Shown piece by piece: positions 10,980 through 61,202 of a stretch of DNA of 64,000 bases. Both the position numbers and the translations under genes were made by a program. A model generated the notes under the pieces. It saw nothing but the letters and a program-made list of their open reading frames with translations, was not told where the DNA came from and searched no databases. The first letter of the stretch is position 1. Each line of letters opens with the position of its first letter. Location of the stretch: positions 1 through 64,000 of IMG/VR virus record IMGVR_UViG_3300049215_000771. One strand, written 5' to 3'.

Positions 10980-11593
10980 TGCTTCCCGATAAGCTGAACC
11001 TATATTTCGACGGATCGTGCGGGCCTAACAACCCAGGCGGCACGGCAGGATATGCGTGGCGACTGGTGGACCCCGATACCGGCAAAGTATTGGCCCAGGA
11101 CTGCGGCGAAGTATGCCGAGGCCCAACGGCGACGAACAATATCGGCGAGTGGGGCGCTGTCAAGGCGGGGCTGGAACACCTTGCCGAGAAGGGCTGGAAG
11201 GGAGAACTCAATATCCGAGGCGACAGCCAGTTGGTGATATACCAGCTAATCGGCAAGTATAAATGTCGCAAAGACACATTGATTCCCTTCTACGAGGCGT
11301 GTATGCTTATCTTGGAAGGCTGGACGTGGGACGCTCACTGGATTCCAAGGGAGCAAAACGATGAATGCGACCGAATGTCCAAGCAAGCCTACGCCCCTGG
11401 CAGACGAGGCACAGGAGATATACAACGACCTGTGGAACGATTGCAAAGAGATTCGGGAGATCATGGAGGAGTACGGTCTGAGTTGGTCGGACGTGGCAAG
11501 AAGTCTCGAAGAACACGGGCCACACAGCGGAATGGACCTGGACAAACCCAACCGCTGCCGGGTGAGGAGACGCCAGAAGTGGCGTTCGATTGA
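10979..11593 (+). CDS. rnhA: ribonuclease HI-like protein (second paralogue)
   Basis: LYFDGSC...ATNNIGEW...GDSQLVIYQL.G.YK...WIPREQNDECD. Confidence 0.88.
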   Translation: MLPDKLNLYFDGSCGPNNPGGTAGYAWRLVDPDTGKVLAQDCGEVCRGPTATNNIGEWGAVKAGLEHLAEKGWKGELNIRGDSQLVIYQLIGKYKCRKDTLIPFYEACMLILEGWTWDAHWIPREQNDECDRMSKQAYAPGRRGTGDIQRPVERLQRDSGDHGGVRSELVGRGKKSRRTRATQRNGPGQTQPLPGEETPEVAFD

Positions 11594-11600
11594 TGACTGA
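11361..11600 (+). CDS. RSIDD-tagged hypothetical protein
   Basis: Ends RRRQKWRSIDD*; overlaps the RNase H tail in another frame. Confidence 0.6.
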   Translation: MNATECPSKPTPLADEAQEIYNDLWNDCKEIREIMEEYGLSWSDVARSLEEHGPHSGMDLDKPNRCRVRRRQKWRSIDD

Positions 11601-13183: not shown

Positions 13184-13277
13184 GCCCTTGTAGCTCAATT
13201 GGTAGAGCATCTGACTCTTGTGCTAGAAAGCACCCAAGTTAATCAGAGGGTTCAGGGTTCGAGTCCCTGCGAGGGCA
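13184..13277 (+). tRNA. tRNA-Lys(CTT) (or Asn GTT) with 21-nt insertion in the anticodon loop
   Basis: Normal acceptor, D and T arms; TCTGA-CTCTT[GTGCTAGAAAGCACCCAAGTT]AA-TCAGA; A73 favours Lys. Confidence 0.75.
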
Positions 13278-13279
13278 CT

Positions 13280-13709: not shown

Positions 13710-13783
13710 GGTGGTGTAGGTTAGCTGGCTAAACCGCCTCTCTCATAAGGAGGAGATCGTGGGTTCGAGTCCCACCACCACTA
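13710..13783 (+). tRNA. tRNA-Met/Ile2(CAT)
   Basis: CCTCT-CTCATAA-GGAGG. Confidence 0.85.
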
Positions 13784-13788
13784 CTACT

Positions 13789-14031
13789 ATGGACGACAAA
13801 ATCTTCAAGGTGCCGGACGCAGGCGAAAACGTCGTTATCCGAATCTTGCCGCCGAAGAAGGTTATGCCGTTTTATGCGACAAGGGTTCACAGGCTGCATC
13901 AGAAGAACAAAGCCTGCCCGATCTGTGAGTACGAGAAGCAATTGTCGGAAAAGCAGAAAGCCAATGGCGCAGGTGGAAGGAAGAAGAAGCGCTGGAGGAA
14001 TATCGACGAGCCTTGGGAGGCTTCGTCGTAG
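13789..14031 (+). CDS. gp32-like SSB N-terminal fragment with RSIDD-type tag
   Basis: GENVVIRILPP...H...CPICEY then KKKRWRNIDEPWEASS*. Confidence 0.6.
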   Translation: MDDKIFKVPDAGENVVIRILPPKKVMPFYATRVHRLHQKNKACPICEYEKQLSEKQKANGAGGRKKKRWRNIDEPWEASS

Positions 14032-18098: not shown

Positions 18099-18464
18099 AT
18101 GGACAACATCGACGACTTGCTGAAGGATTTGTACAGCAAAGAACCCCGCAAGCGGCGCAAGAAGAAATATCGCAGCATTGACGACCCCTGGGAAGATTCA
18201 AGCGAATTCAAGCCCTTCAAAAAGCCGACAATCAAATCCTTCAAGCCTGTTGAGCGGTATTACTACAATGCCGTCATACGGGATCAAAGCGGGTCGATGG
18301 GTGAGGCGAAGTTGTTTTCTGTTGGGCCGACCTTGCACAAGAAGATCATGGAGGCTATGATTGGAACGGGGCAAATGCAAAGTATGTCAACGGTCGATCC
18401 TGTATCTGGAAACGAAGGCGCACATCCAGTTCGGCGGGATGGCCCCTCCAGTTCAGAAAGATGA
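18099..18464 (+). CDS. RSIDD-tagged protein with gp32-like SSB central fragment
   Basis: KKKYRSIDDPWEDSS then KPVERYYYNAVIR...KLFSVGPTLHKKIMEAM. Confidence 0.6.
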   Translation: MDNIDDLLKDLYSKEPRKRRKKKYRSIDDPWEDSSEFKPFKKPTIKSFKPVERYYYNAVIRDQSGSMGEAKLFSVGPTLHKKIMEAMIGTGQMQSMSTVDPVSGNEGAHPVRRDGPSSSER

Positions 18465-19058: not shown

Positions 19059-19483
19059 CGGATGATTGCAAAGTTTCCGAGAAAGCTGAATGCTATGGGC
19101 ATCTCGATCAGGCGCTTGGCCAGTATGAAAACCTCAGATTCCTTAAAGATATGAGGGTGCAGAATCGCCAATATATGGGCGACGGGATCGACGAGAAGTT
19201 TGTCTGGACGGTCAATTATGATCGTGGCATGAAAGTTTTGCGGAAATTGATTGCTTGCTACGTTCCCGAAGACCTGGTTGATTGTACTTTCAAGTACGTT
19301 GCTGCCATGTACGATATGGAGTGGCGGCGGTACGAGCAGGACAAGCAGGCTGGCAAGGTGAAGGCTGGTTCTGAAGATTACAGGAATTACTCCTGGCGTG
19401 GCAATGGGCCGAGGCCATACTTCGAGGAGTTGATTTCCACTTTCATGAAGAAAAAGAAGCATCGCAGCATTGATGACGAGTAG
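19055..19483 (+). CDS. RSIDD-tagged hypothetical protein
   Basis: Ends KKKKHRSIDDE*. Confidence 0.6.
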   Translation: MTDDCKVSEKAECYGHLDQALGQYENLRFLKDMRVQNRQYMGDGIDEKFVWTVNYDRGMKVLRKLIACYVPEDLVDCTFKYVAAMYDMEWRRYEQDKQAGKVKAGSEDYRNYSWRGNGPRPYFEELISTFMKKKKHRSIDDE

Positions 19484-24936: not shown

Positions 24937-25007
24937 GCCCCCAGGGTGTGGCGGACGCATACCAGTTTCCTAAACTGATGGGCCAGGTTCGACTCCTGGT
25001 GGGGGTA
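24937..25007 (+). tRNA. tRNA-Arg(CCT)
   Basis: CAGT-TTCCTAA-ACTG. Confidence 0.82.
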
Positions 25008-25009
25008 CT

Positions 25010-25429
25010 GTGAAGTTTCAAGTTGGCGACATTGTGAGGATCAAAGATGGAGTGATTGGAGCGGGTCAGACAGGGATCATTGAAGAAATTAAGCCCTGGA
25101 ACATCAACAGCCCGCTTGCCGAACTTCGTGAGGATTTCCATTTCTGTGTCCTGGAAGATGGAGTTCGAGCCAAGTTCACGGCGGATTTGCTGGAGAAAGT
25201 TGGTGCCTTGAAGTACCGCCTGGGCGACAGGGTACTCATCAAGACGCCTGGGTTGACTGGTTACGGCGAAGTGGGAGTTGTTGTTGACCCTATTGACGAC
25301 TTGACCATTACTGTGGAACTTCCCAAAGTCCCTGGTCAATCCAACGAGCAGTGGCATCGGGTCAAATATACGGATGATGACATTCAGAAAGTCGGTCCTA
25401 GTTCCTGGAGGTCAATCGACGATGACTGA
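25010..25429 (+). CDS. tandem SH3/KOW-like protein with RSIDD tag
   Basis: FQVGDIVRI and YRLGDRVLI repeats; ends WRSIDDD*. Confidence 0.65.
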   Translation: MKFQVGDIVRIKDGVIGAGQTGIIEEIKPWNINSPLAELREDFHFCVLEDGVRAKFTADLLEKVGALKYRLGDRVLIKTPGLTGYGEVGVVVDPIDDLTITVELPKVPGQSNEQWHRVKYTDDDIQKVGPSSWRSIDDD

Positions 25430-27498: not shown

Positions 27499-27569
27499 GC
27501 CCCTTGAGTGTGGCGGACGCACGGCACCCTCCGAAGGTGTAGGTACAGGTTCGACTCCTGTAAGGGGTA
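27499..27569 (+). tRNA. tRNA-Arg(CCG)
   Basis: GCACC-CTCCGAA-GGTGT. Confidence 0.85.
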
Positions 27570-27572
27570 CTA

Positions 27573-27878
27573 ATGGCCTCCTGGACGGATTTCTTCAAGT
27601 TATGGTCGTATGCGAGAAAGAACCCAATGCCAGCAACAAGTGTAACGGGAATCGGGTCTAGTCTGAATACTGAAGGCAAAGGGTATTCGGTCATCATTCT
27701 GGTGGACGAGAAGGCTCACCACAAGATGACGGATGAAGTTTTCCGCAAGGCTGATTACGTCATCACAAAAAGCGGCAAGTACATCAAGACCCGTGATGGC
27801 CAACATCCGGTGATTTTGAACACGCCTGCCGAGCCGAAGGAAAAAGACAAAAAATATCGGAGCATCGACGACGCATAA
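27573..27878 (+). CDS. RSIDD-tagged hypothetical protein
   Basis: Ends KDKKYRSIDDA*. Confidence 0.65.
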   Translation: MASWTDFFKLWSYARKNPMPATSVTGIGSSLNTEGKGYSVIILVDEKAHHKMTDEVFRKADYVITKSGKYIKTRDGQHPVILNTPAEPKEKDKKYRSIDDA

Positions 27879-36194: not shown

Positions 36195-36268
36195 GGCGGC
36201 GTAGCTGAGTTGGCTCAAGCGCCTTGCTCATAACGAGGAGTACGTCAGTTCGATCCTGACCGCCGCTA
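36195..36268 (+). tRNA. tRNA-Met(CAT)
   Basis: CCTTG-CTCATAA-CGAGG. Confidence 0.88.
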
Positions 36269-36270
36269 CT

Positions 36271-36300
36271 AAACGCCACTCGATTTCGAGTGGCGTTTTT
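36271..36300 (+). terminator. rho-independent terminator
   Basis: AAACGCCACTCGA-TT-TCGAGTGGCGTTTTT. Confidence 0.8.
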
Positions 36301-36314
36301 GCTAGGATAGGGCC

Positions 36315-36992
36315 ATGAAAAACCGACCCTGGCTCGCATACCCAAAGAAGGAAGGCGAAAACATAAAGTTTCGCATTCTTCCCCCATTCCGGCCACTGAG
36401 CCTACAGTGGCATACGTTCGCTCGTGCTATTGATACAGCCTATCACACCTTCCAATGTCCCAGGCGGCTCGTTGCTGCTCGTTGGGAGGGGTATTGTCCG
36501 GCCTGTGAATACGTCAAAGAACTCTATGGTGCCGGCCTCGCAACTGGAGATATTGAAGAGGCCAAGCGACTGAGGGCGTGGGAGCGACATTACTACAACG
36601 TCTTCGACCGAGCGGATAATTTTCCCAAGGGGTTCGCAGCCTTCAAAGCTACACACCAACATCTTCTGACTTATATTCTTGGCGATCCTGACCAGGGCAT
36701 TGCAGCCTGTGGCGATATTACCGACATGACTACAGGTCGAGATGTCATTGTTCACTGTGATAAGATCATGGCGGGGAAGTACCCCAACTACCAGGTGATC
36801 TTACTTCAACCCGGCCCGTTCAATGAAGAAGCAGAAATTTGCAACTTTTTCAGTGAGTGGCCGGATGATTTTGAAGATGTGCCTCAAGACCACACCACTC
36901 AAATTGAATACGTTATCGAGCATTTCTATCGTCATTCGCCCAGGAAGCGACGTATGTGGCGTTCGATAGATGAACCCTGGTCTTCGCAATAA
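36315..36992 (+). CDS. divergent gp32-like ssDNA-binding protein with RSIDD tag
   Basis: KEGENIKFRILPP...CPACE...RHYYNV...GDITD...GRD...YPNY; ends RRMWRSIDEPWSSQ*. Confidence 0.7.
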   Translation: MKNRPWLAYPKKEGENIKFRILPPFRPLSLQWHTFARAIDTAYHTFQCPRRLVAARWEGYCPACEYVKELYGAGLATGDIEEAKRLRAWERHYYNVFDRADNFPKGFAAFKATHQHLLTYILGDPDQGIAACGDITDMTTGRDVIVHCDKIMAGKYPNYQVILLQPGPFNEEAEICNFFSEWPDDFEDVPQDHTTQIEYVIEHFYRHSPRKRRMWRSIDEPWSSQ

Positions 36993-53252: not shown

Positions 53253-55010
53253 ATGAACAAGGAAATCTACAAGCCAGACCTGTTTGACTGGCATGAAGGC
53301 AAGCAGACCTTCTATATCACCACTGCCATTGACTACCCGAATGCCAAACCACACATCGGTACGGCCTTCGAGAAGATCGGTGCAGACATCCAGGCTCGCT
53401 TCTGGCGATTCCTGGGCCATGAAGTCTTCTTCCTCATGGGGAACGATGAGAACACCGTCAAAGTGTTGAAGGCTGCACAAACCGATGGTTACTCCAGTTA
53501 CAAGGAGATGACCATCAAAGCCTACGCCGACCGCATGGCCGAGGAGTTCAAGGAAGTCTGGCGGGCGCTGGATATTTCCAACGACGATTTTATCCAGACC
53601 AGCGAGCAACGCCACAAGATTGGCGTGCAGCACTTCATTCAGACCGTGTATGACGCCGGTTTCATCTACAAGAAGCCTTACGCCGGCTGGTACTGTGAGG
53701 GGTGTGAGGAATTCAAGCTGGAGAAGAACCTTCAGGACGTGGCCGGTCACAAAATCTGCCCGAACCACCCACTGTCGCTGGTGTGGCGTGAGGAGGAGAA
53801 CTACTTCTTCAAATTGTCGGCGTTCAAACAGTGGATTCTGGATTTGTACGTTCCGGCTTTCGACTCGCCCTACACCGAGGTTCTTCCCGCAGCCCGGCTC
53901 AACGAAATGGAGAATTTCGTCAAGGGTGAACTGGATGATATTTCCATCAGTCGCAAGAACGAAGGCTGGGGCATTCCGGTTCCCTGGGACGAATCCCAGG
54001 TCATCTACGTTTGGTTCGACGCCTTGTTGAACTACCTGACTGGCATTGGTTTCCCCGACCCCAAGTTCCAGAAGTGGTGGCCGGCACGGTGTCACGTCAT
54101 CGGCAAGGACATCACCCGCTTCCACTGTGCCTTGTGGCCGGCAATGATCCATGCCTACAACCAGAAGGCCACGGTGAAGCTGTGTGCCCCGGAGAAGGTG
54201 TTCGCACACGGTTTCATCTACCAGAAGAAGGGGGATGAGGCTATCAAGGTGTCGAAAAGCGGCACCAGCATCAACCCGATGGACCTGGTTGAGAAGTACG
54301 GCAGCGATGCCTACAGGTACTACTTCATGTCGAAGTGTTCCTTCGCCCACGACGGCGAGTACAGCTTGCAGCACTTCAATGAAGTCTACAATGCTGAACT
54401 GGCGAACAACCTGGGCAATCTTGCCAGTCGGGTCGGGAATATGGTCCTCAAGAATCTGGAGGGCATCATTCCGAGCAAGGAGGCGATTGAGAAAACGGGC
54501 AACTTGACGGACGTTGGCTACAACTTCTTCACCATCGAAAGCCTCAACGAGTGGGTGAAGGCGACGGAAGCCTTTGACTATCGCCGTGGCCTGGGTATCG
54601 TGTGGGAAATTCTCATCCGTGCCAACAGGTACTTCGACGATAGGAAGCCCTGGACCTTGGCCCGGAAGAAGGGTGAGCCGCTGGACCAGGATAAGGTGAT
54701 CCAGCTTGCTTCTACCCTTCGCAACACTGTTGCCATGATTCGGTGTGTGGCGATTTTGCTGAAACCTTATCTCCCCAGGGCATCGGAAAAGTTGTATAAT
54801 ACCTACGACTGGCCGGTGAAATGGGAAGACCTGAGCTACAATCATCTCCTGGAGATCGTCAAGGAGAACGATTGTGGGTCGAGGGACGAGTTCCGGCTGA
54901 ATCCGACTGCACTGGTGAAGGATGAAAACAACAAAACAGGCGACATCCATTTCCTCAAGTACCCAGCCTTGTTCCCCAGGGTTGAACTTAAAAAAGATGA
55001 GGCAGTCTAA
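53253..55010 (+). CDS. metG: methionyl-tRNA synthetase
   Basis: FYITTAIDYPN..PHIG, YVWFDALLNY, IGKDI.RFH, KVSKS, LAN.LGNL. Confidence 0.95.
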   Translation: MNKEIYKPDLFDWHEGKQTFYITTAIDYPNAKPHIGTAFEKIGADIQARFWRFLGHEVFFLMGNDENTVKVLKAAQTDGYSSYKEMTIKAYADRMAEEFKEVWRALDISNDDFIQTSEQRHKIGVQHFIQTVYDAGFIYKKPYAGWYCEGCEEFKLEKNLQDVAGHKICPNHPLSLVWREEENYFFKLSAFKQWILDLYVPAFDSPYTEVLPAARLNEMENFVKGELDDISISRKNEGWGIPVPWDESQVIYVWFDALLNYLTGIGFPDPKFQKWWPARCHVIGKDITRFHCALWPAMIHAYNQKATVKLCAPEKVFAHGFIYQKKGDEAIKVSKSGTSINPMDLVEKYGSDAYRYYFMSKCSFAHDGEYSLQHFNEVYNAELANNLGNLASRVGNMVLKNLEGIIPSKEAIEKTGNLTDVGYNFFTIESLNEWVKATEAFDYRRGLGIVWEILIRANRYFDDRKPWTLARKKGEPLDQDKVIQLASTLRNTVAMIRCVAILLKPYLPRASEKLYNTYDWPVKWEDLSYNHLLEIVKENDCGSRDEFRLNPTALVKDENNKTGDIHFLKYPALFPRVELKKDEAV

Positions 55011-55181: not shown

Positions 55182-55418
55182 ATGAAATTCTTCGTGGGCG
55201 ATACGGTTCACGTTTGCACGACCGATCCAGTGACAGGAATGTGGAAGCACCTATATGACGCTACTGTGGTGGAAGCGGACGAGTGGAAGGCTCGTGTCCT
55301 GGTGCGAGAGGGAACATATGGTTTCTGGTATTACCAGGAAGACGGCAAAAAGATTGGAATATCCACACGGTATATATCAAAGAAAATCGACGGGTGGAGA
55401 AGTATTGACGACGAGTAG
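55182..55418 (+). CDS. SH3-like small protein with RSIDD tag
   Basis: MKFFVGDTV...; ends GWRSIDDE*. Confidence 0.65.
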   Translation: MKFFVGDTVHVCTTDPVTGMWKHLYDATVVEADEWKARVLVREGTYGFWYYQEDGKKIGISTRYISKKIDGWRSIDDE

Positions 55419-55503: not shown

Positions 55504-55585
55504 GGGGTTATAGCTTAATGGAAGAGTGGCGAGGTAAGGCCCAAGTGGTCCCTCGCAGGTAGGGGTTCGACTCCCCTTAGCTCCA
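55504..55585 (+). ncRNA. tRNA-like RNA with enlarged anticodon loop
   Basis: GGGGTTA/TAGCTCC (Ala-like G3:U70), AGGGG-TTCGACT-CCCCT; GCGAGG..CCTCGC encloses 16 nt. Confidence 0.6.
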
Positions 55586-55660
55586 CTGAATGAAAGGCAT
55601 CCTGATACTTCTGATTCTCTCCCTAATCATCGCCATCACCGCAATCCTGACGAGGAAAAA

Positions 55661-57537: not shown

Positions 57538-58113
57538 ATGACGACGAAGGCATGTCCTAAGCGAGTCATTATCACGAAACCCGACTACTTGTTGGGCAAA
57601 ATGGGTGTTCTCAAAGGAGATCGCTTCAAGTACCCCAGCCAGAGTTTTTGGGTTCAACCTGTTCTCCTGGACGATGGGAGCGAAGTCCTAGCGCTGGCAT
57701 ACGAGGAGTGTATGGACGAAGCACCTATCAAAATTGATGTGGACCCAACTGTGGTCTACGACTACCAGGAATGTCTACAGCGAGCCATCTGTCATCATTG
57801 CGGCAAAGCGCTGCATTGGAAACTCGCCAACATCCTGAACAACAAAGAACATTTCCACGATGACCGTTTCTGCTATGCGGTTTGTTGTCTGACCAGGTAT
57901 TCGATGGTCCCGGAGAAGGTGCGGATTGTCGCATCACTCGATGTTCCTGAATGCACCGAGGACGACAAAGACGATGAACTGAAGATTGAGGATGAAGAGT
58001 TCCTTCGTGAATTGCAGAAGATGAATCTGCAAACCAAGGATCAGATCGACGACTTGCTCATTCTTTCTGGAGTGAAACCACGTCCCTATGAGGATGATGA
58101 CGATTTGAAGTGA
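57538..58113 (+). CDS. hypothetical protein
   Basis: CHHC and CC pairs; acidic tail. Confidence 0.55.
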   Translation: MTTKACPKRVIITKPDYLLGKMGVLKGDRFKYPSQSFWVQPVLLDDGSEVLALAYEECMDEAPIKIDVDPTVVYDYQECLQRAICHHCGKALHWKLANILNNKEHFHDDRFCYAVCCLTRYSMVPEKVRIVASLDVPECTEDDKDDELKIEDEEFLRELQKMNLQTKDQIDDLLILSGVKPRPYEDDDDLK

Positions 58114-58149
58114 TGGGTCTGAAGCCTATGATACACCAAGGAGTGTATC

Positions 58150-58437
58150 ATGGGTCCAGAACAAGAAGACACCGGCCAGTTCAAACGCATCGCCATCCCC
58201 CTGGTCAGGAGGATATATCCTCAACTTATTGCGAACAAGATCGTAAGCGTTCAGCCGTTGTTGGGGCCGACAGGATTGACGTATTATCTGCGCCATCGGT
58301 ATTCGCAGAATTCACAAAGTCAGCCGCAACCGACAACTATTGACGGCGCTTTTGAGAATCCGCCGACCAGGAAGAAGCAGATCAAGAAGAAGAAATACCG
58401 TAGCATCGACGATCCGTGGAGCGCTGATGGTTCCTGA
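58150..58437 (+). CDS. major capsid protein (gp23-like) N-terminal fragment with RSIDD tag
   Basis: IPLVRRIYPQLIANKIVSVQPLLGPTGL.YYLR.RY then KKKKYRSIDDPW. Confidence 0.75.
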   Translation: MGPEQEDTGQFKRIAIPLVRRIYPQLIANKIVSVQPLLGPTGLTYYLRHRYSQNSQSQPQPTTIDGAFENPPTRKKQIKKKKYRSIDDPWSADGS

Positions 58438-58696
58438 TGACAGTCAAATTCGGGACGCCGTAGAAACCTGTTTCGATGAAGGTACGCAGGACGCCATGAA
58501 GTACCTGAAGGAATACGGCGAGGAAGAATTCAAGAAGGTTCTCCAGGAGGAACCGCCGCCCGGCGTCGGTTTCCATCCTGGGAGTCTTCTTGACAAGTTG
58601 CGCCAGTGGAACGGCGTATTCAAAGCCAAGATGGAAGATGCCAAACGTGGCAAGAAACGCCGCCGTACCATCTGGCGCAGCATCGACGCAAGGTAG
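58427..58696 (+). CDS. RSIDD-tagged hypothetical protein
   Basis: Ends KKRRRTIWRSIDAR*. Confidence 0.6.
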   Translation: MVPDDSQIRDAVETCFDEGTQDAMKYLKEYGEEEFKKVLQEEPPPGVGFHPGSLLDKLRQWNGVFKAKMEDAKRGKKRRRTIWRSIDAR

Positions 58697-58725
58697 TTTA
58701 CAAATCTGTGTTTTCGTGGTATCAT
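58697..58725 (+). promoter_or_regulatory. sigma70-type promoter
   Basis: TTTACA-N17-TATCAT. Confidence 0.65.
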
Positions 58726-58750
58726 TCCGTTGAATACACACGGAGATACC

Positions 58751-59185
58751 ATGCCTACCAAACAAGTAATCGTGTGGCGGCAAGACCTGCAAAACGTCCC
58801 GAAGGGCAAATTCGGGGCGCAGATGGGTCATGCTGCCCATTTGTTCCTCACGGAGCAAGTCCGGGCCGAGTACGGCGGTAAGGGGCCGAAACTCCGTGCT
58901 GGCGAATCTGGCCGGGTTGAAATCCGTCTGACTCAGGCCGAGATGGATTGGATTCTTGGCAACTACCGCAAGGTGGTGGCCTGGGTCCGTTCCGAAGAAG
59001 ATTTGATGACGGTTTACAACAAGGCCAAGGAACTCGGTCTGCCCGTGCATCTCGTCACCGACGATGGGTTGACGGTTTTCGACAAACCCACGAAGACTTG
59101 TATTTCCATCGGTCCTGCCGAGGAATCGGAAGTGGACAAGGTGACGGGAGAGGCCGGGCCTCTTGGAAAGTTGAAGTTGCTATGA
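58751..59185 (+). CDS. pth2: peptidyl-tRNA hydrolase, Pth2 family
   Basis: KQVIV.R.DL...KGK..AQ.GHA...KVV...V.D.G.T....T.T...IGP....VDKVTG...L.LL. Confidence 0.9.
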   Translation: MPTKQVIVWRQDLQNVPKGKFGAQMGHAAHLFLTEQVRAEYGGKGPKLRAGESGRVEIRLTQAEMDWILGNYRKVVAWVRSEEDLMTVYNKAKELGLPVHLVTDDGLTVFDKPTKTCISIGPAEESEVDKVTGEAGPLGKLKLL

Positions 59186-59526
59186 GCCAGGATTTTCTCT
59201 GGACATTCTTCAACCAACTCCCCATTGGGGCGAAGTTCAAGATGTCCGATGATCCCCAGCCGGTGTACGAGAAGCGCAGCGAGTACCAGGCGTGGCGGCG
59301 GACGGACCCTTGGGGATTGGGACAGCCCGGCAAGACCATGATGGTTCTTGACGGGCATGTTGAAGTGATGCCCGTCGATGTCGCCGAATGTTACTGGTGT
59401 GGTGGCGAATTCGCCATGATCGACCTGGTGTATATTCCAAGGAAGGGTGACAATCCCGACGCCGAGCCTCGCCGATTCATGTGTGCCGATTGTGATTTAG
59501 GCGATGCAGATGAAAGCAAACCATGA
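59182..59526 (+). CDS. hypothetical protein with C-terminal Zn finger
   Basis: CYWC...CADC. Confidence 0.55.
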   Translation: MSQDFLWTFFNQLPIGAKFKMSDDPQPVYEKRSEYQAWRRTDPWGLGQPGKTMMVLDGHVEVMPVDVAECYWCGGEFAMIDLVYIPRKGDNPDAEPRRFMCADCDLGDADESKP

Positions 59527-60050
59527 TTCCGGTCTTTGTTACCGACAAACACGCCCCACAAACCAGCCCTTGTTATTTCTGCTACACTGGCTCATCTGGC
59601 GTGGCAGAAGCCTTCAAGTCCTGGGATGATGGTCTGGCGAGATTTGTTGCCGATATTCTTCGGGAAGGCCCGGAGGCCAAACCGACGCATCAGATATGCA
59701 GAAGTTGCTATGAAGCCGGCAAACATCGCCAGCGTAGTCGATGCCAGAACTGTGGGAAATTAGCAAGCCTGCTGCGAACGGCCAACGATTCGATGACGAA
59801 TACTTGGGCGGATATTGGCCCGGACCATGTTATCTTGTGTGAAGTATGCCAGAAGGTGTACTACGACACGGACAAGCGACAATGGACGTTCAAATATGAC
59901 GGCGGCGGCAAGCTGATAATACCGTATACGAGCAAGGTTCCGCTGACGGACGAAGACATTCTCCTGCTTAGACGGCTATGGCGGGAGTACCCGGACTGGA
60001 AAACCAGGAACAAGATGCCGACATTGCACCGGAGGATCGACGATGATTAG
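59523..60050 (+). CDS. Cys-rich protein with RSIDD-type tag
   Basis: Several CxxC; ends LHRRIDDD*. Confidence 0.6.
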   Translation: MIPVFVTDKHAPQTSPCYFCYTGSSGVAEAFKSWDDGLARFVADILREGPEAKPTHQICRSCYEAGKHRQRSRCQNCGKLASLLRTANDSMTNTWADIGPDHVILCEVCQKVYYDTDKRQWTFKYDGGGKLIIPYTSKVPLTDEDILLLRRLWREYPDWKTRNKMPTLHRRIDDD

Positions 60051-60660
60051 GGGCACCAGACACTTATTCGGTGCAGAGGCTCGATTATTTCACGAAATAA
60101 CGAGCGAGTTGCGTAGAATAACTATACAGGAAGGCTACCAGGAGTTCATCCCCTCCGCACTGTGCGAGGTGGAAGTCTTCACAGGGAAGGCGGGGCCGGA
60201 AATCCTGGGTCAGATGTACACGTTCAAGGACAAGAAGGAACGTGAAATATGCCTTGTGCCAGAGATAACTGCTGTGGTACAAAGTATATATACTGCCGAC
60301 TGGTCCAAGTATCTCCCCAGGCCGGTGAAAGTGTTCTACCTGGCCCGATGTTACAGGTACGAGCGGCCACAGGAAGGTCGCTATAGGGAGTTCTGGCAGT
60401 TCGGTGTTGAGAACTTGGGCGGCAAGACATCCAAGGAAGAGATGATTGATCTGCTCAGGAAGTCTTTGGAGGCGTGTGGCATCGAGTTTGTCATCAACGA
60501 TGGCGTCAAACGAGGGCTGAATTACTACGTTGAAGATGGCTTCGAGGCTGAAGTGGCAGCACTTGGCGCTCAGAAGCAAGTGGCCGGTGGAGGCCGGTAT
60601 AGTGAAGGCATCGGATGGGCCATTGGAGTTGATAGGCTGATGCTGGCGAAACAAAAATGA
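60043..60660 (+). CDS. hisS: histidyl-tRNA synthetase-like catalytic core (no anticodon-binding domain)
   Basis: RGT, MYTFKD, L.PE.TA, YRYERPQ.GRYREF.QFGVE, RGLNYY, GGGRY, GWAIGVDRL. Confidence 0.85.
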   Translation: MIRGTRHLFGAEARLFHEITSELRRITIQEGYQEFIPSALCEVEVFTGKAGPEILGQMYTFKDKKEREICLVPEITAVVQSIYTADWSKYLPRPVKVFYLARCYRYERPQEGRYREFWQFGVENLGGKTSKEEMIDLLRKSLEACGIEFVINDGVKRGLNYYVEDGFEAEVAALGAQKQVAGGGRYSEGIGWAIGVDRLMLAKQK

Positions 60661-61202
60661 CGTATGCTATTCTGGTCGTGATGCTGATGGGATTCGGCTA
60701 CATTGGCTGGAAGCTGCACAGGTTGGAGAAACGATTGGCTGCAAATGAAGCAGGCCAGAAAACCAACAATGAGCAGATAGTTCAGGTCAATCAGCGAGTT
60801 GTTGCAACAAATCAGTTGTTTGGCAACCTCGACACGAAGATTGACAAGACGAACAAGAAGGTCGGTGAAATCGACAAACGCACAACTCCTGGTGCGATGA
60901 CGAAAGAACAACTCGACTTCAAGGAGGACTTGGAGAAGAGATGGAAAACTACGATGGAGAAGGCTAGGACGGACCTGGCCGAGCAGCTTGTTCTGGATAA
61001 GGACAAGTTGAAGGCCGATGTAGAAAAGTACAAAGCCGGGTTTGAGGCAACGGTCAAGAAGGCATATGATGAAGCGTGTGCCAAGATCGACTTCGAGCGG
61101 GTAGAGTACAAGAAAACCATCACCAAGAAGCGGCGAGAGTTTAGCCGCAGCCACAAGGCGGTAACACCGCAAAGAAGTTTCAGGTCGATAGATGATGAAT
61201 AA
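60657..61202 (+). CDS. membrane-anchored coiled-coil protein with RSIDD tag
   Basis: N-terminal TM helix; ends RSFRSIDDE*. Confidence 0.65.
   Translation: MTYAILVVMLMGFGYIGWKLHRLEKRLAANEAGQKTNNEQIVQVNQRVVATNQLFGNLDTKIDKTNKKVGEIDKRTTPGAMTKEQLDFKEDLEKRWKTTMEKARTDLAEQLVLDKDKLKADVEKYKAGFEATVKKAYDEACAKIDFERVEYKKTITKKRREFSRSHKAVTPQRSFRSIDDE

Follow-up and report, generated by a model that had tools for sequence, protein, structure and literature searches.

A conserved capsid-fragment gene with a shared C-terminal tag in a huge phage, possibly one of a set of self-fragment adaptors or mimics

Results

A capsid-fragment gene in a translation block

The window, meaning the whole stretch of DNA analysed here, is the first 64 kb of IMG/VR virus record IMGVR_UViG_3300049215_000771 (532,729 bp, GC 53%, classed by IMG/VR as a provirus). 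Near its end lies a 95-aa open reading frame, ORF 58150, in which a piece of the phage's own major capsid protein (the bait) is followed by a linker and a C-terminal tag. DNA runs containing this region originate from moss metagenomes. A search of small proteins found the identical 95-aa protein on a 673-kb contig, which makes it likely that the record was trimmed from a larger huge-phage genome, and bacterial-looking phage genes may have been cut away from it as 'host'. The features at and around the ORF are:

53253-55010: MetRS
55182..55418, plus strand: tagged 78-aa ORF, ends WRSIDDE
58105..58132, plus strand: sigma-70-like promoter match, TTGAAG-16 nt-TATGAT (consensus scan, 9/12, not enriched over shuffles)
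58124..58155, plus strand: 13-bp RNA hairpin (-23.1 kcal/mol, z=-5.1 vs shuffles)
58150..58437, plus strand: bait-linker-tag ORF, 95 aa (from the ORF list; public gene callers agree, with PF07068)
58168..58311, plus strand: bait, residues 7-54, copy of the phage's own capsid residues 55-102
58312..58359, plus strand: linker, residues 55-70, rich in Q/S/P; length and sequence vary among orthologues
58360..58419, plus strand: tag, residues 71-90, PPTRKKQIKKKKYRSIDDPW; 35 ORFs of the record share this ending
58427..58696, plus strand: overlapping 89-aa ORF with degenerate tag RRRTIWRSIDAR, a conserved neighbour of the bait gene
58751..59185, plus strand: PTH2 peptidyl-tRNA hydrolase (Pfam PF01981, E=3.3e-24)
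59523..60050, plus strand: tagged 175-aa Zn-ribbon protein, ends HRRIDDD
60657..61202, plus strand: tagged 181-aa protein with N-terminal membrane helix and coiled coil, ends FRSIDDE

The ORF runs from an ATG at 58150 to a TGA at 58435-58437, and a Shine-Dalgarno sequence, AAGGAG, is located at 58138-58143, six bases before the start. Residues 10-73 match Pfam PF07068 (Gp23) at E=1.4e-14, above the gathering score, over profile positions 3-62 of 376, and PHROG 138 (major head protein) matches at E=8.5e-14. The full capsid gene occupies record coordinates 338843-340279 and encodes 478 aa, and the bait is identical to residues 55-102 of this protein at 42 of 48 positions (88%, E=5e-26). Residues 15-54 of the ORF align to residues 95-134 of T4 gp23. 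The C-terminal tag reads KKKKYRSIDDPW, with its core YRSIDD at 58396-58413 and five residues following residue 90. An earlier note, made from the letters of the window, had described the start, ribosome-binding site, stop, capsid segment, linker and tag and had named capsid homology beforehand as a check on its reading; the description is borne out in each part, and the homology is clear both from the Gp23 match and from the identity to the phage's own capsid.

The bait corresponds to the best-conserved stretch of the capsid, immediately ahead of the variable insertion domain, and in terms of the HK97-fold capsid we take it to be the N-arm plus the first E-loop strand. AlphaFold2 gave no independent fold for the 95-aa protein (pLDDT 66, pTM 0.26), as would be expected on such a model for a peptide that needs a partner; its model of the capsid, built from a three-sequence alignment, had a pLDDT of 37. 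With 60 profile positions of 376 and this pTM, the ORF does not encode the complete HK97 fold of a shell subunit. Judged by its sequence, the product is a Gp23 fragment homologue and not a capsid protein.

The bait gene is found one to three genes upstream of PTH2 in seven genomes. On its upstream side, this syntenic block contains MetRS together with an AIR-synthase-like gene; on the downstream side are an HNH gene, an ArgRS-like gene and RF-1, and tagged neighbours are interleaved. Two homologues with the ending …EGF are located elsewhere, outside the PTH2 block, and the conserved synteny may be inherited gene order alone. Orthologues of the overlapping ORF at 58427..58696 end in WRSIDD, WRKITDDWE and HRSILDDWE, and those of the 60657..61202 protein in WRSITDE, HRSIDDE and WRYIDEE. 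Upstream of the syntenic block by a few genes, a related huge-phage contig in ENA, the one that carries P0066, codes for an 886-aa protein containing a major-vault-protein shoulder domain.

The position among translation genes given in the earlier note agrees with the presence of MetRS, PTH2, a HisRS-like gene and 38 tRNA genes in the window. The HisRS-like gene (60043-60660) encodes a 205-aa class-II aaRS catalytic core without the anticodon-binding domain and is situated between two tagged genes. Two of the 38 tRNA genes (13184-13278 and 55504-55586) were predicted by ARAGORN to have four-base anticodons (cttg and aagg) and unusual length, and could be frameshift-suppressor-like or intron-bearing. 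Four tagged ORFs elsewhere in the window (within 13710-14031, 24937-25429, 27499-27878 and 36195-36992) start 1-5 nt, or in one case 46 nt, past the 3' end of a tRNA, and tRNA processing would leave them leaderless or nearly so.

The RNA hairpin at the ORF places the Shine-Dalgarno sequence in its loop and the start codon in its 3' arm, and the TATGAT -10 hexamer of the promoter match is part of its 5' arm. Transcripts started locally would lack the 5' arm and would therefore be translatable, and read-through transcripts would not. The same hairpin design is present at the PTH2 start (58715-58753, z=-3.3), together with a strong promoter match, TTTACA-17 nt-TATCAT with TG. The two hairpins suggest that ORF 58150 and PTH2 are translated only from locally started transcripts, in a layout that presumably resembles that of T4 genes e and soc. 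This hairpin/promoter design is not conserved at the orthologous loci. Moss metatranscriptomes contained a few 150-350-nt contigs of the region and none over ORF 58150.

Selection on the bait and its homologues

Comparison of the bait with its parent capsid gene gave a nucleotide identity of 71%, a pS of 0.75, which is saturated, and a dN/dS of about 0.04. Across five capsid pieces, the same codon was used at identical residues 57 times, compared to 59.4 expected (z=-0.4). Since synonymous sites are randomised and codon identity is at the level of chance, the likeness between bait and capsid has been held in the protein sequence since a very ancient split. Deliberate recoding against recombination with the parent was also considered and is unsupported, as codon identity equals the random expectation. 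Between five orthologues with available DNA, the bait has a pN/pS of 0.07-0.19, with pS again saturated.

A search limited to small proteins returned 102 homologues with a Gp23 match, among which truncated N-termini of genuine capsid genes at contig ends were readily told apart. About 40 are true orthologues of 57-125 aa from other huge-phage contigs, with the same architecture and a recognisable tag, and the core FKRISIPLVRRIYPQLIANKIVSVQP is nearly invariant across 43 homologues. Orthologues have in common the C-side breakpoint (…YYLRxRYS), or have a bait that is shorter still, and the tag then comes; in P0107 and P0078 the bait is cut down to 17-27 residues. Relaxed selection, a broken frame and variable decay between relatives, the marks of a pseudogene, were not found. 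The comparison of breakpoints and dN/dS proposed in the earlier note thus turned out as it had anticipated, with the same C-side breakpoint, a retained tag and low ratios, and the bait-plus-tag architecture is supported by a family that has clear capsid homology and does not consist of tag-less, degraded pseudogenes.

A tag conserved as peptide

In a six-frame translation of the 533-kb record, RSIDD occurs 33 times against 0.41 expected, with 0-1 occurrences for each scrambled version, and 29 of the 33 motifs are at most nine residues from a stop codon. The 35 tagged ORFs, 65-231 aa in length, end in a [KR]-rich run and [YWFH]R-S-I-D-D, often then P-W-E-x-S. More generally, the tag is about 20 residues long and has the form of a basic run, then [YW]R-x-I-[DT]-[DE], often then P-W-E. 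All six Arg, all six Ser and all three Ile codons are in use within it, and because every synonymous codon is represented, the tag appears to be a peptide signal conserved at the protein level; a DNA-level repeat as its origin was rejected on the same grounds.

When a profile of the tag was searched against 1.84 billion proteins, only 18 matches were significant, all of them small proteins with the motif at the very C-terminus and none of them a large annotated protein. The GenBank phage collection contained no phage with orthologues of two tagged neighbours and no second capsid-fragment match, and a literature search for the tag strings found nothing relevant. In other phage lineages, the same bait is joined to the tag variants IWRDITEPWEPS or VWRSITEPWE, or to a different C-terminus, …W-K-x-E-G-F.

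Tag types were compared in five genomes using a conserved gene block that holds four tagged genes. One genome has I-T/S-D/E in 4/4 tags of the block, another has I-D-D in 5/5, the genome of the window has I-D-D/A in 5/5, and two further genomes have mixed tags (ITE, ILD, IDE). Because tag types change in parallel at unrelated genes, this comparison of sequences suggests one common, genome-specific reader that co-evolves with the tag, although the signal is partial.

Capsids of these related phages are mutually 84-96% identical. The 595-kb relative LR756511, whose capsid is 84% identical, lacks the tag altogether, and subtracting its genes in the search for a tag reader left 124 candidates, too many to be useful. 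A sliding clamp as reader was rejected, since neither a T4-type clamp nor a family-B polymerase turned up in the 533-kb record. Reading I-D-D or I-T-E as a prohead-protease site was likewise rejected, as the last residue varies between D, E and A. LR756511 also encodes a second prohead-protease paralogue with a signal-peptide-like N-terminus (242240-243133) and an untagged 64-aa piece of the capsid C-terminus (588119-588313). Given this untagged fragment in a tag-less phage, genes for fragments may have existed before the tag arose.

A genome-wide set of tagged self-fragments

The tagged ORFs were compared with all ORFs of the record and of four related records by profile and short-match searches. 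The following ORFs, identified by record coordinates, gave the assignments listed:

58150: capsid residues 54-104
453477: capsid residues 256-311
517817: capsid residues 317-370
351369: capsid residues 403-448
518216-518509: chimera of capsid residues 436-464 with SpoVR residues about 49-81
238157: prohead protease (Peptidase_S77) core, residues 44-167, with candidate catalytic His and Ser replaced
351097: C-terminal region of a 663-aa head-module protein adjoining the protease
27573..27878, plus strand: tagged 101-aa ORF that begins with a 20-residue copy of the portal N-terminus
200293: first 19 residues of the 786-aa tail sheath
13789..14031, plus strand: tagged 80-aa ORF, residues 32-68 a gp32-type SSB fragment (profile search E=1e-24 to 1e-25 vs related phages' SSBs)
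36315..36992, plus strand: tagged 225-aa gp32-like SSB core, with the tag in place of the usual acidic C-terminal tail
247046: PrkA residues 574-631
11361..11600, plus strand: tagged 79-aa ORF, no parent assigned
19151..19483, plus strand: tagged 110-aa ORF, no parent assigned
25010..25429, plus strand: tagged 139-aa ORF, no parent assigned

The portal-like N-terminus that the earlier note had suspected at 27573 holds up, with 11/20 residues identical to the first 20 residues of the phage's own 855-aa portal, a stretch that is conserved in the portals of four genomes. Initial identification of the 532-aa and 698-aa parents as portal and sheath was wrong, and these are SpoVR and PrkA. Full-length PrkA, SpoVR and canonical SSB were not found in the 533-kb record. 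Since the record is trimmed from a longer contig and the three genes adjoin one another in related genomes, we place no weight on these missing parents.

In the SSB-like and protease-like paralogues, the tag stands instead of the parent's own C-terminal part. The C-terminal tail of T4 gp32 is an interaction tail. For several tagged proteins with a membrane helix at the N-terminus, no parent could be recognised. Homologous tagged pieces are also present in other metagenomic phages and in three IMG/VR relatives.

Several arrangements in this set are unusual in themselves. The chimeric ORF at 518216-518509 is one of five tagged genes arrayed in tandem at 517.8-519.7 kb. In the ORF at 18099-18464, a complete tag (KKKYRSIDDPWEDSS) near the N-terminus is followed in frame by an SSB-derived piece, and the ORF may be a fusion of two mini-genes or may have lost a stop codon; in another phage, the same SSB piece (P0120) has its tag at the C-terminus. 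A shortened paralogue resembling the capsid is encoded by an untagged 160-aa ORF at 524328-524810 of the record; it shares 33% identity with capsid residues 307-432 and has a capsid-like ending (…ARLSLCNYVI).

We found no description in the literature of such a pattern of tagged fragments spread over a genome.

Discussion

A bait-plus-tag adaptor or mimic as a tentative reading

The reading that we prefer, and hold tentatively, is that ORF 58150 encodes a competitive mimic or bait-plus-tag adaptor and belongs to a set of about 35 such genes in this phage. The bait, a free-standing copy of a conserved capsid segment, would have kept its fit to the surface that normally receives that segment, since it has been conserved almost residue for residue despite having no fold of its own. 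The tag would act as a C-terminal docking peptide recognised by the common, genome-specific reader, so that the mini-protein could occupy the acceptor site of the capsid segment and couple that partner to the reader.

For the bait of ORF 58150, the acceptor that we favour would be EF-Tu, with an unassembled capsid subunit as second candidate. In T4, the isolated 29-residue Gol peptide is active, binding EF-Tu domains II-III and enabling cleavage by Lit (PMC3014915). Our leaning towards EF-Tu comes from this binding together with the bait gene travelling with PTH2, MetRS and RF-1 in seven genomes. An EF-Tu acceptor, proposed by analogy, is the weakest link of the reading, and the 17-27-residue baits of P0107 and P0078, being shorter than the Gol peptide, count against it. 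Structural inference points to neighbouring parts of capsid subunits as the other possible acceptor surface. Since four other capsid pieces carry the same tag, EF-Tu cannot explain the tagged set in general. With 88% identity to the phage's own capsid, the bait would disturb assembly of that capsid unless its timing or dosage were controlled.

For the set as a whole, we advance a broader proposal with somewhat greater reserve. It may be a regulatory layer of huge T4-related phages, a library of self-fragments that mimic interaction segments from core virion, replication or PrkA-module proteins and share one co-evolving tag and a single reader, which escorts, caps or times the phage's own assembly and may involve EF-Tu.

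Other explanations

The fragments might instead be anti-defence decoys that show epitopes of core phage proteins to host sensors, with the tag passing a captured sensor to an inhibitor or protease. This follows the idea of the earlier note, which had proposed a bait for a host sensor or for the capsid subunits of a competing phage. It is documented that Avs, Dsr1, CapRel and Lit respond to capsid, portal, tail and replication proteins (bioRxiv 10.64898/2026.01.04.697583; PMC3014915), a 'core phage proteome' with which the tagged baits overlap, and Lit and CapRel read short motifs of capsid proteins. However, most Avs-type sensors wrap the folded core of the trigger protein (bioRxiv 10.64898/2026.01.04.697583), and pieces of 20-55 residues without an independent fold would escape them. 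Lit is the only peptide-level sensor known for this segment, and the Gol peptide activates Lit rather than blocking it (PMC3014915). Moreover, the PrkA and SpoVR pieces copy bacterial-type proteins that are unlikely to be immune triggers, and no match to any defence or counter-defence family was found. The tagged programme is not capsid-specific, as baits also come from sheath, portal, prohead protease, SSB, PrkA and SpoVR. Overall we regard the decoy explanation as unlikely.

It is likewise improbable that the tag is a capsid- or scaffold-targeting peptide by which the tagged proteins are packed into the prohead as internal cargo, some of them being ejected into the next host. Such a role would account for one short terminal peptide common to many unrelated small proteins, and the head module (capsid, protease, portal and the 663-aa protein) is the source of many baits. 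About 11 kb separate the capsid gene from two fragment genes, whose orthologues are found within the head modules of the related genomes G002 and G003, and the tag is basic, like packaged DNA-binding proteins. The cleavage-site rule of T4-type prohead proteases is L-x-E, and some family members include a capsid propeptide stretch, AVLLE-NQR, that resembles such a site. Yet LR756511, with its 84%-identical capsid, has no tags, ORF 58150 is in a translation block and not in the head module, and no cleavage-site pattern is consistent across the tag variants.

We consider it very unlikely that the fragments are a weapon against co-infecting relatives or satellites, poisoning the capsid, sheath, portal, SSB and PrkA assemblies of rivals in a dominant-negative manner. 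Every identified parent is a self-assembling protein, which would suit this role. Inter-subunit elements include the N-termini of portal and sheath and the arm segments of the capsid, and protein fragments can inhibit their parent assemblies. PrkA and SpoVR pieces without parent genes in the 533-kb record would also fit, but the missing parents are probably an artefact of the trimmed record. The argument that a parent is absent from the genome was therefore dropped, the record being trimmed from the 673-kb contig. A capsid-piece weapon could not tell self from rival, since the capsids are 84-96% identical to one another and the bait is 88% identical to its own.

Debris, that is, a remnant of a broken capsid gene copy that is by chance in frame with a common repeat, is extremely improbable and, among these four alternatives, the only one that the data contradict: the ORF is short, lacks an independent fold and has no transcript contig over it, but the bait is under strong purifying selection, its breakpoint and tag are conserved in dozens of genomes, the tag is conserved as protein and not as DNA, and the start, ribosome-binding site, stop and synteny are intact.

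Implications

If the bait-plus-tag reading is true, viruses can evolve whole sets of peptide mimics of their own assembly interfaces, routed through one docking signal. This would be a new principle for the control of very large capsid and tail assembly, or for the takeover of host factors, EF-Tu among them. Further gains would be natural peptides, already tested by evolution, that inhibit or escort capsid, sheath, portal and SSB assemblies of the T4 type, and a portable tag-and-reader pair. Whatever the mechanism, a class of small "ORFan" genes in huge phages is explained, and small Gp23 matches should not be annotated as broken capsid genes.

Comparison with known systems

Targeting peptides of HK97-fold shells, including the T4 capsid-targeting sequence, the C-terminal tail of the HK97 protease and encapsulin cargo-loading peptides, are likewise short terminal peptides shared by many proteins. 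The T4 capsid-targeting sequence is N-terminal and is removed by the prohead protease at L/I-x-E, whereas the tag is C-terminal and the residue at its would-be cleavage position varies between D, E and A. The encapsulin cargo-loading consensus differs from the tag, and a close relative has almost the same capsid but no tag. The ssrA tag is added co-translationally by tmRNA, in contrast to the tag described here, which is encoded in frame in every gene.

Hub-binding C-terminal tails include the SSB tip DDDIPF and the clamp-binding S-L-D-F-L-F type of T4/RB69. Like these sequences, the tag is at the extreme C-terminus and has acidic and aromatic residues after basic residues, and in the gp32-like paralogue it is found where the acidic interaction tail normally stands; the resemblance is no more than a lead. 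The tag recalls both capsid-targeting and hub-binding tails, and has the tested defining features of none of these systems.

For the bait, the closest parallel is with T4 Gol. The gp23 stretch 95-134 to which the bait aligns is the region taken to hold Gol. A review describes the Gol region as the most conserved part of gp23 (PMC3014915), and we equate the bait with it because the bait is the most conserved stretch of the capsid family. Gol differs in being an internal, untagged part of the full capsid protein, whereas here the segment has become a conserved gene of its own that ends in a docking tail.

MicroProteins, which descend from larger proteins and interfere by way of the parent's interaction surface, have been described mostly for eukaryotic transcription factors; the preferred reading adds an address label to this mode of action. 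We know of no case in which dozens of them in one genome have a common C-terminal address peptide, or in which they derive from virion proteins. Like microProteins, the product of ORF 58150 is a small protein with a gene of its own, maintained under selection and drawn from one interaction segment of a larger parent that self-assembles.
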